Both the position numbers and the translations under genes were made by a program. DNA of 64,000 bases from Iphione sp. A-MEVVRFRX5 (Eukaryota), in contig OZ320316.1 in the NCBI GenBank assembly GCA_976226885.1, positions 63,860,001 through 63,924,000 on the forward strand, written 5' to 3'. This document shows positions 1,229 through 57,039 of this stretch, piece after piece (the stretch's first letter is position 1; every line of letters begins with the position of its first letter). A model generated the notes under the pieces. The model saw nothing but the letters and a program-made list of their open reading frames with translations. It did not search any database and was not told the origin of the DNA.

Positions 1229-2831
1229 CTGCAACAAGAGGAAAATGATAGGTTAGCTCTAGCACTGATTATATACATGTACTCTTAACAGAACAGTACA
1301 GCCAGAATAATACATGTACATGTACTGTAAATTTATGTGTCTCCATACAATAGAAATTAGCGCCTGTTAAAAACAATTTTAAATAACCTTTAATGTGGTA
1401 TCCTATTCACTGACAGACATCACGAATATCAACATAGGTACAAGCAGCACAACGGTCATTCAGACAAATCTCGGACATCATTTTTGCGTAGGTATAGCTT
1501 AATGGAATCCACGTCCATGCACTACTGGTCTACAAGACTGGATCTTTTATGCGAATCTAGGTCAAAATGCCCTCACGGCTGCAAGCCTAAAATATAAAAC
1601 TTGCTGAAGGATGTCGGCCCCTTAGGCCCTGTGGTTTACACGAAAACCATTTATTTTTCTGAAAGTAGAGAAAGACAAAACTTCTTGAGTACACCTGGAC
1701 ATGATAACTTAAGAAATACTGACAATTTTTTAAACCAGCGTCACAAAACTATTGACGCATTTCACTTCAGGCGTCCGCTTATGATCAACACCTCATCCAA
1801 AGTATTAGCATGCTCTTGCGCGTACGGACAGCGCGTGCATGCTAAACAAACGTAGCGATCTGTAGTAGGCATGTTTCTCACTCGAATCAAGTCTAGGAAT
1901 GACAGTTTTAGAAATTAATGGGCTCATGTTTAGGATTCATGGAGAGCCGATAGTCTAATGACCATCATACCGCCGCAGTGGCTTCATTTCCCGCCCTGGC
2001 GACACATAACTGTGATGGATATGTTTCCGCTCCTCGAGATGCAGCCTACCCCCCGAGGGAATTTTTACCTCCCCTCCTCGTGTCAATCAATAAAAGTCAC
2101 AATCAATCAAGTCGCTATTAATTACTTTAGGAACAGAAAACTAAAACTTAATTGATGTGTCCCAGAGTTGCATAGTAATAGTAGGATACCTCATTTAAGA
2201 TTCTTAGCAACGAGCCCCAGGCCTACAACGTACTGAATAAACAGTACTCTTAATAACGTAATCTAACAAATTCATGAACTGGTGTATTTGGTTCCACGCC
2301 CTGTACCTGTATTAGCGGAGGAAGAAACGTCTTCAAAATGAAATGCGACATTATACATCCCAAACGGGACCGTTGTTTTCAACACGTACATGTATTTCAA
2401 TGGGAAGGTGTCGTTTGTGTATTTTGGTAATTACTCTAATCAGCATGTAAACCATTGAAAAGCTCTTTCCAGGCCTGATCTAGAAATCCTTGTTAATCTC
2501 CCCCACTTAGTCCTGACCTGGTCAGACCAGCGTACCTATATTCGCCGACTAATCCACCTCGGAGAGCCTAGGCCAAAGAGGGCTTTGGTTACTTGAAGAC
2601 ATCATAGCAGGAGAGCGCCAATCACCACGATTAGTGGCGAGGCCGACGTACCGAGCGGCAAAACCAACCATGGAGGGGATACAGGCAGGGTCAGACGGAC
2701 GTGTCCACACCGCATGTATTAACACAATCCTTTGTCTTATTTGCCGTCGACTTTAAGGCATCAAGCCTAATCCCCTGAGACTCGGGAGTGTATACATACG
2801 GTACACTGGCAAGTGTGCGTGCGTGTGTGTG

Positions 2832-2865
2832 TTTTTTTTTTTTTTTTTTTTTTTTTTGGGGGGGG
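2832..2865 (+). repeat. T26-G8 homopolymer tract following a short (GT)n
   Basis: Seen directly; could be an inverted retroelement poly(A) tail, not verified. Confidence 0.9.
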
Positions 2866-52800: not shown

Positions 52801-55800
52801 AATAGATGATATGGGCGGCTCACCTTTAGCCGACTTGGCGCCTTCCAAACTGACTACCATCTACGTTTATTTGTATATCTCAAGGGCCAGTCGCTTTCGG
52901 GACAGCGCGCGAGAGACCTGTAATAGAAGCTGCGTGCCTCTGACCTCTGACCCCTGTTTCACTGCCTTCTGGCGGAAAGTTTGAGCATCATGCATGCGTC
53001 TTGGCCTGAACACGTTGGTCAGATCCCGGGTTTGCTTACTATCAAGTGAGATGTTGAGAAGGGGATGGGGTGCGGTATCCGACCTCCGAGACGCACTAGA
53101 TAAACAAATGTTCCTCCTGCAGCGCTCCAAGACCTCGACTTTGCCGCCAACGAAAATACAGGGCCCTATAAGACACCGTGTGCTGTCTCGTGCTTAAACA
53201 TTTGGTTGCAAAAGCCAAGGTACCAGACACGCCATGTTGACAGACGAGCTACCGATCTGCCACCTTCCCTGCGGCCTTTCCAGAAGACAGCCCAGTATTA
53301 GCAAGATTGTCTCAGTCCTAGGCTTTCCTGGAAGGCAAGGCATTCCTTCCTGTAAGTCATGGATTGGCTGCCTTTATCGAGGAGAACGTGCCATGCTGCA
53401 GGCACCTATGAGAACCAACTATCCAAACAAAAACGGAAAATGGATTATGGGCATTTTCATTTTTGTTTGGGGGGGAGCAATAAAAACTGTTTTTCTCCAA
53501 AACCTAATAAGAACGAGGTGCATGACGTTAGCATCACGGGTAACTCATCAGCTTAGTGGCGCAGAGGGAGAAAGTTACCTGCCAATGGGGCAGTTTGGCA
53601 GTGCTCTTGTCACCTCAATTGCTTGGCGTCACGGCCTTGTAGTAGTTATCGGTAATCATAGAGGAGGCGGACAACCTGGAGCGAAGGGTGATCGAGCCAG
53701 TGCACTTGTCCCCGTCGACCGGAGGATGGCGTGTCTTGACACGACGGGTCAGGATAATCCTCGATTATCTCCTCGAAGACTGAGCGGAAGAAAAAAAACA
53801 CTGACAGTATCAGAAGCTGAAGGTCCTAGTCATGAATACGAATTCTGCGTATTTCCGGCAGGTGAACTGCATGAATATTCACCTAGAAAAACTGAAGGAT
53901 GTTGGAAGTGGGGTATACCGTAATTTCGCAGACACGTCCTTTGTCCTATACTAAGGTATATAGAAGATAGAGCTGAGTGTTTTATGCTTGTGAACAAGAC
54001 AATACGAAAGTGTTTTTACCGAGCATGCATTCACCTTATACAAGAACATAGAATTTCGCAATCATAGAGAGATAAGTTCATTCAGTGCAAGATTGCAGTC
54101 AATTCGGAAGTGATACAGAGAATGCTAGGGTAGGTATTACTTGTTTCTTGTGTGAAGGCAGATATACCAGTATAAAAATCGCAATGGAATCCATCATGTG
54201 CAATGACATTATTAATGACGAAAAAACGGCCTTGAAGATACTGCAGATCGATTTTCTTCACTCTTGTGCATTAGGCAGTATTATCTATGTTCCATGGTAA
54301 TGGGCATGGACACGGCCGTGTATATGTGAGGAAGTGATGTTTTTCTTAAGCATATATATATTTATCTTCCCGGCCCTCCATACCCAAAGAGGGTTTGCCA
54401 TCAGCATTACGTGCATAAATGAAAATAATCTTGCAAGCGGTCGGCCATTAACAACACGAACTTGTGAAGACGAAAATCCTGCAAGGCCCATGAAAAATAT
54501 TCTTCGTCAGTTGGGCTGCACATACCTAAAGACTGACTGAGGTAATGGCAGGTCTGGATGTCAGAAAAAAGCCATGGTGCCCCCTTGCGGCGAACATGGC
54601 AAAGGTCGGGTGATTGTCCAGGTGGACTGGGAGCGGGTCGGCCGTTCCATCTGGCCTCTGGTAGACCCTGGTTATGGATATCTTGTGTTTGACGAGATTC
54701 TGGTACAACAGTCCACCTTCCTTTGCTTTTACGGGAGGACGTCAAGGGGCCTGGAGACAACTCAGGGCTTTTTCCTCCCGTCTCTGATGGAAGCAAGGTA
54801 AGGTTTAGCTTGGGGATGCCGAATAAAGGATTGGCTATTCACCACGGTGAAAGAGAAGCATAGTCTGGCGCGCATTGCTATAGGCTGGCAGGGAAACACT
54901 GTTATTAATATCCCGCATAAAACACAAGGAAGGTCGGTCTGGTGGGAGGAGACAGCCTCAAGGAGCCTTACATGATCACTCCCCTGTGAACAAACCTGCA
55001 GATCTGAGCCCATGGCATGCGACCGATCTTAGCCGGGGGCGATAACAGGGTCAGGCGGGGGATCTTTCTGACAGCTAACTCACCCTCTCTGTTTCTTTAT
55101 CCATCTACAGGGGTACAAACCTCCATTTTATAACCTTTGGAGTATGCATACAGCGGTTGAACAATGGGTGAGGATCAATGACGCGACATGTTTCCTCCGC
55201 TGGCAGTCCACGAATTACTGCCGACCAAATTTCACAGCATTCCTTTGATACAACTAGCTTAAAGGGCAGGAATAGATGCCGAGTGACGGGATTTATATGT
55301 GCACACGATGGCCTACAGCTATAAACAAAATCCACCGCCGTCTAAGCAAGCGGATACAATTGTGGCGATATAAAGTGCACTTCAATGCTATGACAGCATC
55401 ACTTCTATCCCTGATCTGCACAAAGTAACGTAAATAGATCCGATGCGTGCTTCCTGCGGAAGCCAAGCAGCACTTCCCATGATTATTTAACCAATAAAAA
55501 ACTCATCTACCTCTGTTTCTTGCGTCATCTTTACTGTATGGCTTCCACATACGAACAGCCGACGATGTCTTCCTTGTTTGAGATACCATTATTGAGGCGG
55601 ATGACAAGGAAAGTTACAAGATAATCATTATTAGCTGCTTCCTTCAGGAAAGCGAAGTCTATTTTGCCAGCGGCAAAGCTTGATTTAAAGTAAAAAGATG
55701 CTACCGACATCCGATAGACCTCTCCGCACATGGAACATGGCTGTTTTAGACCCAAACTCTGATTATCCTGAATTATTCATAGCAGCCTAAGAAAACTGAA

Positions 55801-57039
55801 CGGCCAGCTGAAATATGTGCGCGATAGATATGCAATGTTCTCTTTCATTTCGGGGCTTTGGTTTTCTTAGCTGCATGCACAGAGCTCTTCCGCTCTATAG
55901 ACATTGGTACTGAGCATGTCTCTTGTTCTGCGATGTCTCTCACCCACGGCATTTCGCTGCACGGATGGAACATGCTTCTAACATGATCGAAGTAGGCAGC
56001 TACGATCTTAAAATATTGCCTTTTAGGAACTTTGTAAATTAAAATGTCTCTTCCTTCGGTAACAAGTATGGGAAACTTTCCACCAAAGTTATGAACGAGC
56101 CATTCGCCGCCGGCGGATCATCAAAGTTCCCATTCCTAGTCCCTTGAAGGTACCAAGTATCTCGATGAGCTATCACTTCAACCATTGCTCATACGAAGGA
56201 ACGAACTCCGGGAGCGACCACTTAATATGTTCGCTGGCATGGGTAATATGAGAGGTTAACTCACGGAGGCTCAATCAGTTATTGCATGGCTAGTTTTCCA
56301 TCGGTCTAATTATGACGGTAACGAAATATATGTAAAATACAGGCTGATAACCCGCCTGGATATCAGTATGGGTAACATTTCCAATATCGGAATTAGGAAG
56401 TTATTGTTTAGGTATCTGAATGAACGGTTATTATGGTTACGGAGTGCATGTGTATTAAGAAAATAAAGGCCATCGCACTAGGATGCCTTTAGATAATTCT
56501 GGCTAAAACCAAATAATAACGCCCTTTGTGACTCATCACTTTCTCGACAGATATTTCCCCGAGTACATCCCCATGCTTCATCTTTCCGACTGCATCATAA
56601 AACAATCTCAAAGGAGAATGTGTTTACAAGAAGGGCCTGGCATCAGCCATACCCTCATTAAGTTCGTCTTTAAAATTTCATAGGTTACATAGTTGGGAGA
56701 TGCTCATATCCCTGGTACGTCATGTACCTCATTAGGGCGCGCGCCATTAAATAAATAATTGGCTGGTCGTAATGACGTTTTCCAGGAGGGAGGTGGTAGA
56801 GGTCTCCTCAAGAAGAAGACAATTTGTTTAAACAGCAGCAGGTAACCGCAACTGCAAACTAGGTGCGAGTTCGGTTCCGTAGAAAGTAACGGATCGTAAA
56901 AACGTCCGTCTTGGGCGGTTAGGATGAGAATCTATGGCTCGCCGAGATAATCATCGGGGATTGTCACACGTTCCTGACGCTAAGTATGGCCGGTCTTATA
57001 AAAGTAATGGCTTTCAGGGAATCCTGCCTGGGTCCTTAC

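Follow-up and report, generated by a model that had tools for sequence, protein, structure and literature searches.

A 55.8-kb intron at a probably ancient position in a putative Fat1/2/3-type cadherin gene of an annelid-like worm

Two small exons and the long introns around them

The window, the whole stretch of 64,000 nt that was analysed, carries two small coding exons on its minus strand, termed here exon A and exon B. They are separated by an intron of 55,811 nt as assembled (135 N included) with GT...AG ends. The features of this part of the gene are listed in the direction of transcription.

57355..64000, minus strand: 3' part of the first coding intron, which is 66,013 nt long in all and extends across L001-L006 as far as the huge first coding exon
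57040..57354, minus strand: exon A (second coding exon, 315 nt), entered and left in phase 1
1229..57039, minus strand: second coding intron, phase 1 inside a Gly codon, GT...AG ends
3674..3808, no strand: assembly gap with non-coding sequence on both sides, within the second coding intron and 2,445 nt before its acceptor
1167..1228, minus strand: exon B (third coding exon, 62 nt), entered in phase 1 and left in phase 0, encoding (G)LITTTNRRLDREKQEEHILE
777..984, no strand: assembly gap in the intron that follows exon B, 183 nt past the exon B donor

An earlier note on this DNA had described a 55.8-kb intron lying in phase 1 within the Gly of HPTTG|LITTT, and direct reading of the splice signals confirmed this at the exact coordinates. 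Exon A has the acceptor ctctttcag|GT ATG ATT and the donor ACA G|gtaagg; exon B has the acceptor ttcctcttgttgcag|GA CTG ATT and the donor GAG|gtaagg. The two exons join in phase 1 through the split codon G|GA (Gly), and the spliced reading across the 55,811-nt intron is ...GFFHIHPTTG|LITTTNRRLDREKQEEHILE. The product of exon A, G|MIWTNEVLDSE...HPTTG|, is one cadherin-repeat period, running from the middle of one EC domain to the middle of the next, and matches the Pfam Cadherin family with an E value of 9e-15. Since both flanking introns lie in phase 1 in the Gly of the motif xIDxxTG|xIxTxxxLDRE, exon A is exactly one repeat period. It is 52-56% identical to the full-length orthologues, aligning with the proteins of Glandiceps talaboti (residues 1116-1221) and Tubulanus polymorphus (1138-1241) and with catfish Fat1a (1089-1192).

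Each exon was searched for separately rather than as a joined model of exon 1, exon A and exon B. The queries for exon B were the 20 residues that follow the junction in the full-length nemertean, hemichordate, catfish and hagfish orthologues. For the post-junction residues of these four proteins, exon B was the single best match in 264 kb (identity 75-85%, E 4e-8 to 2e-6), and the runner-up, a paralogous repeat, had an E value of at least 0.002. Chance could hardly produce such a match. The 3' boundary of exon B is the point at which the read-through models of hagfish, Tetraodon and Liparis depart from the canonical sequence. Because the orthologue residues are contiguous over the junction, no constitutive coding exon is missing between A and B. 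The strong splice signals and the uninterrupted homology suggest that the intron is removed by ordinary GT-AG splicing, which would join position 57040 to 1228, presumably with no alternative or cassette exons in between.

Two gaps bear on the measured distance. The gap at 3674-3808 has non-coding flanks, so the reading frame is unaffected, and it lies inside the intron, so the length of 55,811 nt is an estimate. The gap at 777-984 lies just past exon B and leaves that exon on a 2.7-kb island flanked by two gaps, so that its distance to exon A depends on scaffolding. On the donor side, the stretch between 57039 and 3809 (53,231 bases) has no gap, and no segment resembling exon B or a cadherin lies in it. 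The intron is at least 53 kb long, provided that the scaffold order is correct.

The first coding exon, a huge one of 3,382 nt, lies outside the window (L007:1-2749 plus L006:9368-10000), 66,013 nt upstream of exon A. It ends ...FSIDQRG|GTGAGT, at the equivalent Gly one cadherin period before the HPTTG Gly. The first coding intron spans 123367..57355 in the coordinates labelled big, mostly beyond the window; the intron after exon B runs off the window, and the gene spans more than 205 kb. The 55.8-kb intron had been taken to close the huge first coding exon. This does not agree with the 315-nt exon that precedes it, nor with the position of the huge exon 66 kb upstream. Its length is not singular either, the preceding intron being longer and the following one running off the window, and it is one of at least two, and probably three, consecutive giant introns. 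The gene starts with a 3.4-kb first coding exon for the signal peptide and about ten cadherin repeats, and this exon is followed in order by a 66-kb intron, the 315-nt exon, the 55.8-kb intron, the 62-nt exon and another long intron.

Identity of the gene and its host

The huge exon is 42-45% identical to full-length orthologues across ~1,100 aa. The N-terminal residues are 45% identical over 1,097 aa to the Tubulanus 'protocadherin Fat 1-like' and 42-44% identical to the Glandiceps, Lottia, cuttlefish and catfish Fat1a proteins, whereas Fat4-like matches reach only 25-26%. The large representative search was scored by summed repeats, not by orthology, and its matches were re-ranked by local identity. 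From the identities and a tree, these residues are orthologous to the Fat1/2/3 type rather than to Fat4, Dachsous or protocadherins. The huge exon, exon A, exon B and the downstream exons are collinear with the full-length orthologues and on the same strand. The downstream exons, at C10:63781821-63791193, are 41-50% identical to a catfish Fat1a fragment comprising residues 1457-3098 of the full protein.

In the tree of the N-terminal 1,100 residues, built with FastTree with SH-like support only and with one named annelid as anchor, the gene and the annelid Paralvinella palmiformis share a clade with 100% support. The closest relative, from which P0187 and P0192 come, shows 71-78% protein identity. 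In the tree, a nemertean and then molluscs are the next relatives of the Paralvinella clade, and the hemichordate and the vertebrates form a separate 100%-supported clade. This nesting with Paralvinella, apart from deuterostomes, speaks against amphioxus, which the earlier note had considered as the source. As the genome is not that of amphioxus, neither the premise of kb-scale amphioxus introns nor the proposal that position and length are ancestral to chordates applies. The host appears to be an annelid-like worm, the sole named close relative in the tree being an annelid. We are confident that the gene is a Fat1/2/3-type (Fat-like/Kugelei-type) giant cadherin of a lophotrochozoan worm, and that the 55.8-kb intron is its second, an ordinary GT-AG intron at an ancient position.

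The same exon boundaries in other animals

The vertebrate boundaries come from gene models and from ORF fragments extending into introns rather than from genomic alignments. Homology was lost directly after the C-side Gly in 117 of the 120 fragments homologous to exon A. Val never followed this Gly; the residue there was K, E, T, M or R, which is the pattern expected of read-through into G|GT-RAG in phase 1. On the other side, 99 of the 120 fragments lost homology ahead of the N-side Gly, and the unit was 106 aa long in 94. Models with the boundaries of exon A were found for Limosa Fat1, Columba, Danionella, Lates, Coryphaenoides, Liparis, Tetraodon, Salmo Fat3 and snake Fat1 X1. Those of Limosa, Columba, Danionella, Lates, Coryphaenoides and the snake lose homology right after ...KTG or ...KT, and those of Liparis, Tetraodon and Salmo carry on past the Gly with L[IV]TTT.

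The intron after the second coding exon of vertebrate FAT1 and FAT3 lies at the same aligned Gly (...GNPQGFFxINxKTG|L[IV]TTTxRKLDRE) and gives the read-through pattern of phase 1, as in the worm gene. The exon ahead of it has the same size as exon A (the 106-residue unit), and the boundary after the 62-nt exon (...EHILE|) is likewise the same; the host differs, an annelid-like worm in one case and vertebrates in the other. A vertebrate intron at the HPTTG Gly had been proposed in the earlier note, and FAT1 and FAT3 do have a phase-1-like boundary there, but it follows the 315-nt second coding exon and not the huge exon.

Most of the ~50 single-exon fragments of the huge exon, from many taxa, lose homology at the Gly of ...FSIDQRG, and Anopheles and a sea slug are among those that end at this earlier Gly. 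A cuttlefish model stops at the equivalent Gly, and models of FAT1 and FAT3 also have a boundary there. Four fragments (P0240-P0243) cluster with vertebrate FAT2 and end ...IDEETG, aligned to ...SIDQRG, 105 codons before the HPTTG Gly. The vertebrate huge exon had been thought to end at the HPTTG Gly, and these FAT2-clade fragments place its end one period earlier. The intron that ends the huge exon in Fat1/2/3-type genes is like the 55.8-kb intron in motif position and phase, but lies one repeat earlier; in the worm gene it is also giant (66,013 nt) and is distinct from the 55.8-kb intron. The three exon boundaries appear to be ancient, all of them recurring in the vertebrate FAT1 and FAT3 sequences, and the end of the huge exon appears to recur also in arthropods, molluscs and the FAT2-clustering fragments.

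A literature search yielded no usable data on the exon-intron structure of FAT1/2/3 or on cadherin intron positions. It is known in general that annelids and vertebrates conserve intron positions, and giant adhesion genes of large genomes usually have long 5' introns. Because both patterns are already known, there is little new in the 55.8-kb intron, which is mostly ordinary. Work on Platynereis is said to have found ancient intron positions common to annelids and vertebrates. The worm gene likewise keeps vertebrate-type intron positions and phases; here, however, the comparison concerns one gene and was made through read-through fragments, not genomic alignments. What changes is the description of the intron: it belongs to an annelid-type worm and not to amphioxus, it is the second coding intron, and its position is bilaterian-wide and not a chordate trait. 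Three consecutive Fat1/2/3 exon boundaries common to the worm lineage and vertebrates are a modest addition, and the approach of deducing where an intron lies, and in which phase, from ORF fragments that continue into it may be reusable.

Contents and length of the 55.8-kb intron

Two further features lie within the intron.

4000..4575, no strand: copy of a dispersed repeat family of ~570 bp, ~190 bp from the assembly gap, left boundary approximate
23836..23910, minus strand: candidate recursive-splice site, a fused acceptor-donor ttttcttttctttttatag|gtatgt, the only one on the gene strand

No cadherin-like frame was found inside the 55,811-nt intron, none of the 29 intron ORFs tested (at least 100 aa each) had a Pfam match, and a comparison of the intron with Rfam gave no match. 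The dispersed repeat family has at least 39 scored copies with 83-98% identity and 5,331 first-look candidates (20 kb searched); no large internal repeats were found within the 64-kb window. The size of the intron most likely reflects non-coding DNA and dispersed repeats that would have accumulated in a genome of 1.18 Gb, as in the neighbouring introns; a constraint acting on this position in particular is less likely. Part of the intron may have a regulatory role.

The fused site at 23889 lies 59% along the intron, and a second donor (caacag|gtatgt) follows ~50 nt downstream. Shuffled sequences had a mean of 0.09 such sites, against the one found, and 8.7% of shuffles had at least one; the strict patterns YAG|GTRAGT and YAG|GTAAG did not occur on the gene strand. 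Recursive splicing of long introns has reportedly been observed in Drosophila and vertebrates. As in those cases, the worm intron is a long one in a cell-adhesion gene with one fused polypyrimidine-AG|GT site, after which comes a short putative pseudo-exon with its own donor. In contrast to them, the worm intron has just one such site, known from sequence alone; its donor is GTATGT, and the count is close to what chance would give.

We find it extremely improbable that this intron is the counterpart, in amphioxus, of the giant intron that follows the huge exon of vertebrate FAT1/2/3, with position and length ancestral to chordates. From inside the window the two introns look alike, each interrupting the Gly of the same repeat motif in phase 1, but the small size of exon A, the huge exon farther upstream, the end of the huge-exon fragments (FAT2-clustering ones included) 105 codons short of the HPTTG Gly and the clustering of the gene with an annelid instead of deuterostomes all count against it. 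It is also very unlikely that the 55.8 kb is other than one simple intron, whether by hidden alternative or terminal exons, a nested transcript or a scaffold mis-join at the gaps. Exon B is flanked by two gaps, a snake FAT1 isoform model has an alternative terminal exon within the homologous intron, and exon A, being symmetric (phase 1-1), would tolerate cassette exons of the same phase. However, the orthologues leave no residues over the A-B junction unaccounted for, the intron holds no cadherin-like frame, Pfam domain or Rfam family, the 53.2 kb adjoining the donor is gap-free, and exon B lies in the order and on the strand that the gene requires.

Compared with an ordinary second intron enlarged by accumulated DNA, a reading in which the long introns flanking the two small exons serve a function and have been kept throughout the bilaterians, so that length itself is constrained, has a small but real chance of being correct. 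A regulatory landscape, a delay through transcription time or stepwise (recursive) removal could each be involved. Gene models in several animals break exactly at the introns that flank the small exons: in cuttlefish one model holds the huge exon only and another starts after exon B, in Paralvinella the huge exon and exon A are in separate models, and birds and fishes have stand-alone models of exon A. The fused acceptor-donor site would also fit. Broken gene models are, however, also a product of draft annotation; in one relative, the huge exon and exon A share a 39,989-nt contig, which puts its first intron below ~36 kb; about 9% of shuffles contain a site of the recursive-splicing kind by chance; and the intron carries young dispersed repeats. 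That a huge exon followed by isolated 315-nt and 62-nt exons between very long introns is an arrangement conserved across Bilateria in both length and position seems to us unlikely. If it were true, a conserved regulatory landscape or stepwise (recursive) removal of the introns would lie behind the conserved length, and the 315-nt phase 1-1 exon would be a skippable unit of exactly one cadherin period.

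The intron and the 5' end of the gene

The intron lies on the minus strand of a Fat1/2/3-type (Fat-like/Kugelei-type) cadherin gene, where it separates the second coding exon (exon A) from the third (exon B). A slash marks a splice junction or exon end throughout.

Features of the 5' end of the gene and assembly gaps
L007:1-2749 plus L006:9368-10000 (loci right of the window; C10:63983368-63986749), minus strand: exon 1, the first coding exon, 3,382 nt
57354..57040, minus strand: exon A, 315 nt, phase 1 in and phase 1 out, open cadherin frame
57039..1229, minus strand: the intron, 55,811 nt including 135 N, an estimate of length owing to the gap at 3674-3808
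1228..1167, minus strand: exon B, 62 nt, strong acceptor ttcctcttgttgcag/ at 1230/1229, donor GAG/gtaagg
777-984 and 3674-3808: the two assembly gaps in the window

Exon A follows a strong acceptor (ctctccactctttcag/ at 57355/57354) and ends at the donor ACA G/gtaagg, with its final base at 57040 (sequence read 57400-56900). Pfam detected a Cadherin domain in this exon (E 9e-15). The split codon G/GA encodes Gly, and the joined exons read ...GFFHIHPTTG/LITTTNRRLDREKQEEHILE, which restores the cadherin motif xTGxIxTxxxLDRE. When the 20 post-junction residues of the nemertean, hemichordate, catfish and hagfish orthologues were searched against 264 kb, exon B was the sole top match, with 75-85% identity and E values of 4e-8 to 2e-6. 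In these four proteins the residues are contiguous over the junction position. Judged from sequence, the joining of exons A and B is not a chance pairing. Splice signals, split codon and orthologue matches together confirmed, at exact coordinates, the intron and the phase-1 splice inside the Gly of HPTTG/LITTT that the earlier note had claimed.

The gap at 3674-3808 interrupts the intron 2,445 nt before its acceptor and is non-coding on both flanks, so the reading frame is unaffected. Exon B is on a 2.7-kb island (985-3673) bounded by both gaps, and its placement therefore rests on scaffolding. Its order and strand are those that the gene requires, and no exon-B-like segment was found in the 53,231 gap-free bases from the donor to 3809. 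A high-copy repeat was observed ~190 bp to the right of the gap at 3674-3808, and repeats may thus lie behind the gaps flanking the island.

No further cadherin frame was found on the minus strand at 57416-64000, so exon A is not the tail of a huge exon. A tblastn search with full-length Fat1-type proteins from Tubulanus, Glandiceps and catfish (Fat1a) covered the 200 kb right of the window (L001-L020). One long match was obtained, at 126695..123366 in window coordinates continued rightward, corresponding to orthologue residues ~10-1116; exon A comes next, at residues 1116-1221. The frame of exon 1 opens at an ATG at 126749 with a start that resembles a signal peptide, and ends in phase 1 with ...GVFSIDQRG at AAAGAG/GTGAGT (final exon base 123368). 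Between exon 1 and exon A lies an N-free intron of 66,013 nt, longer than the one between exons A and B. On the other side, the next 120 orthologue residues after exon B had no match in 1-1166 of the window, so the third intron extends past the window edge. Later exons of the same gene were located at C10:63781821-63791193, giving a gene span of more than 205 kb. The 5' end of this gene has several giant introns, of which the 55.8-kb intron is one.

Lineage and exon boundaries in other animals

None of the 150 best representative proteins was more than 55% identical to exon A. Word searches, made with each exon on its own, gave relatives 65-78% identical to exon A and 66-71% to exon 1, and the best named match was the annelid Paralvinella palmiformis (52% over exon 1, 61% over exon A). 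In a FastTree phylogeny of 60 N-terminal regions with SH-like support, the gene fell in a 36-row clade with Paralvinella (support 100), with a nemertean as sister, followed outward by molluscs and arthropods. The hemichordate and all vertebrates formed a separate clade, also with support 100. Since the gene groups with an annelid and apart from the deuterostomes, the premise that this is amphioxus fails, and with it the chordate framing. The genome is 1.18 Gb.

Exon boundaries in other animals were read from proteins called on genomic contigs and from faulty gene models reading into introns, rather than from aligned orthologous loci; the point at which homology stops was taken as the boundary and the first read-through residues as the phase. 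A word search with a piece of exon 1 returned ~50 fragments of 1,100-1,250 aa, nearly all of which lose homology at the Gly aligned with ...SIDQRG and continue into unrelated residues. Anopheles and a sea slug end at this Gly, and a 1,123-aa cuttlefish model closes with ...FTIDNNGK. Four fragments (P0240-P0243), placed by the tree in the vertebrate clade beside caecilian FAT2 and a teleost model, end ...IDEETG/, ...IDEEKG/ or ...INQDTG/. By these ends, the huge first coding exon in other animals, the four vertebrate-clade fragments among them, stops at the Gly that closes exon 1 here and not at the Gly joining exons A and B.

A profile built from exon A and five close relatives matched at least 120 fragments. 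Of the 120 listed, homology breaks off immediately past the C-side Gly in 117 and immediately ahead of the N-side Gly in 99, with a Gly-to-Gly unit of 106 residues in 94 of them. The residue after the C-side Gly in these fragments was K (54), E (17), T (11), M (10) or R (9) and never V, as expected for read-through of G/GT-AAG or G/GT-GAG from a phase-1 donor. At the 3' boundary of exon B (...EHILE/), hagfish, Tetraodon and Liparis models diverge from the canonical sequence, reading through into V-R or V-S.

Vertebrate models at the boundaries of exon A
Boundary on both sides: bar-tailed godwit Fat1, pigeon, Danionella
Boundary on the C side: Lates Fat1-like, Lates Fat3-like, Coryphaenoides
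Correctly joined to L[IV]TTTSRKLDRE: Liparis Fat1, Tetraodon, salmon Fat3

By these read-through patterns, the worm gene and the vertebrate FAT genes have all three boundaries in common, and the intron is the counterpart of the one that follows the second coding exon in vertebrates. The proposed homology to a vertebrate FAT intron is thus retained in part: homology stops in FAT1 and FAT3 models place a vertebrate intron at the same Gly, but it is not the intron that follows the huge exon, as exon A is 315 nt and the huge exons end at the earlier Gly.

Several vertebrate Fat1 models are truncated soon after coding exon two or three: those of snake (P0233), hagfish (P0172), Tetraodon (P0303) and Liparis (P0368). 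In snake, 'Fat 1 isoform X1' (1,222 aa) is canonical to ...FFHINPKT and then carries an unrelated 26-residue tail, an alternative one that is joined to exon A by splicing; the other three read through after exon B. Such models could be artefacts of annotation or genuine short isoforms, N-terminal and secreted. In cuttlefish, two models (P0174/P0175) divide the gene: one stops precisely where the huge exon does, and the homologous part of the other begins about at exon B, the annotation having missed the 315-nt exon and possibly exon B too. In Paralvinella palmiformis, the huge exon and exon A are annotated as separate genes (P0210 and P0298, models LSH36_242g04003 and LSH36_242g04005), with an intervening gene number; this points either to a nested gene or to a first intron that is long in this annelid as well.

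Intron length, content and candidate splice sites

In cuttlefish, Paralvinella, birds and fishes, gene models break at these introns, a hint that length, beyond position, may be conserved. Draft annotation explains the broken models equally well, and in one relative the huge exon and exon A are both within a 40-kb contig. The 55.8-kb intron is ordinary, and its position in this Fat1/2/3-type gene of an annelid-type worm is ancient.

A six-frame profile search of the window with the exon-A unit detected exon A only (E 8e-51; next best E 0.42), and none of 29 tested ORFs of at least 100 aa had a Pfam domain. Rfam gave no match in the intron, and no large internal repeats were found. When 20 kb of the intron was searched against the genome, there were 5,331 first-look candidates. 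All 39 that were scored fell in one ~570-bp repeat family, whose copies on many chromosomes at 83-98% identity suggest a young, abundant short element. One fused acceptor-donor site was found on the gene strand of the intron, 59% of the way along it, with a second donor (CAG/GTATGT) ~50 nt further on. Shuffled sequences had a mean of 0.09 such sites, with at least one in 8.7% of shuffles, and the site is a candidate for recursive splicing only as a weak lead.

Repeats and fused acceptor-donor sites
4000-4575: dispersed repeat, ~570 bp, at least 39 scored copies on many chromosomes, 83-98% identity
49385-49890: two adjacent tandem arrays, a 64-nt unit x5.5 (or 127 nt x2.7) and a 31-nt unit x3.9
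23889 (within 23836-23910), minus strand: fused site ttttcttttctttttatag/gtatgt, polypyrimidine-TAG/GTATGT
L002:2913 (76913 in continued window coordinates), minus strand: single fused site in the 66-kb upstream intron, tttttactcttgCAG/GTATGT

Elsewhere in the genome, uninterrupted open frames of cadherin repeats, ~900-1,050 aa long and often clustered, occur at more than 20 loci on C10 (62.4-63.0, 66.6-66.8, 72.2-72.4, 84.6-84.8, 88.6-89.3 and 92.0 Mb) and C2 (50.8-51.9, 81.3-81.5 and 82.3-82.6 Mb). They resemble single-exon, protocadherin-like genes of an expanded family.
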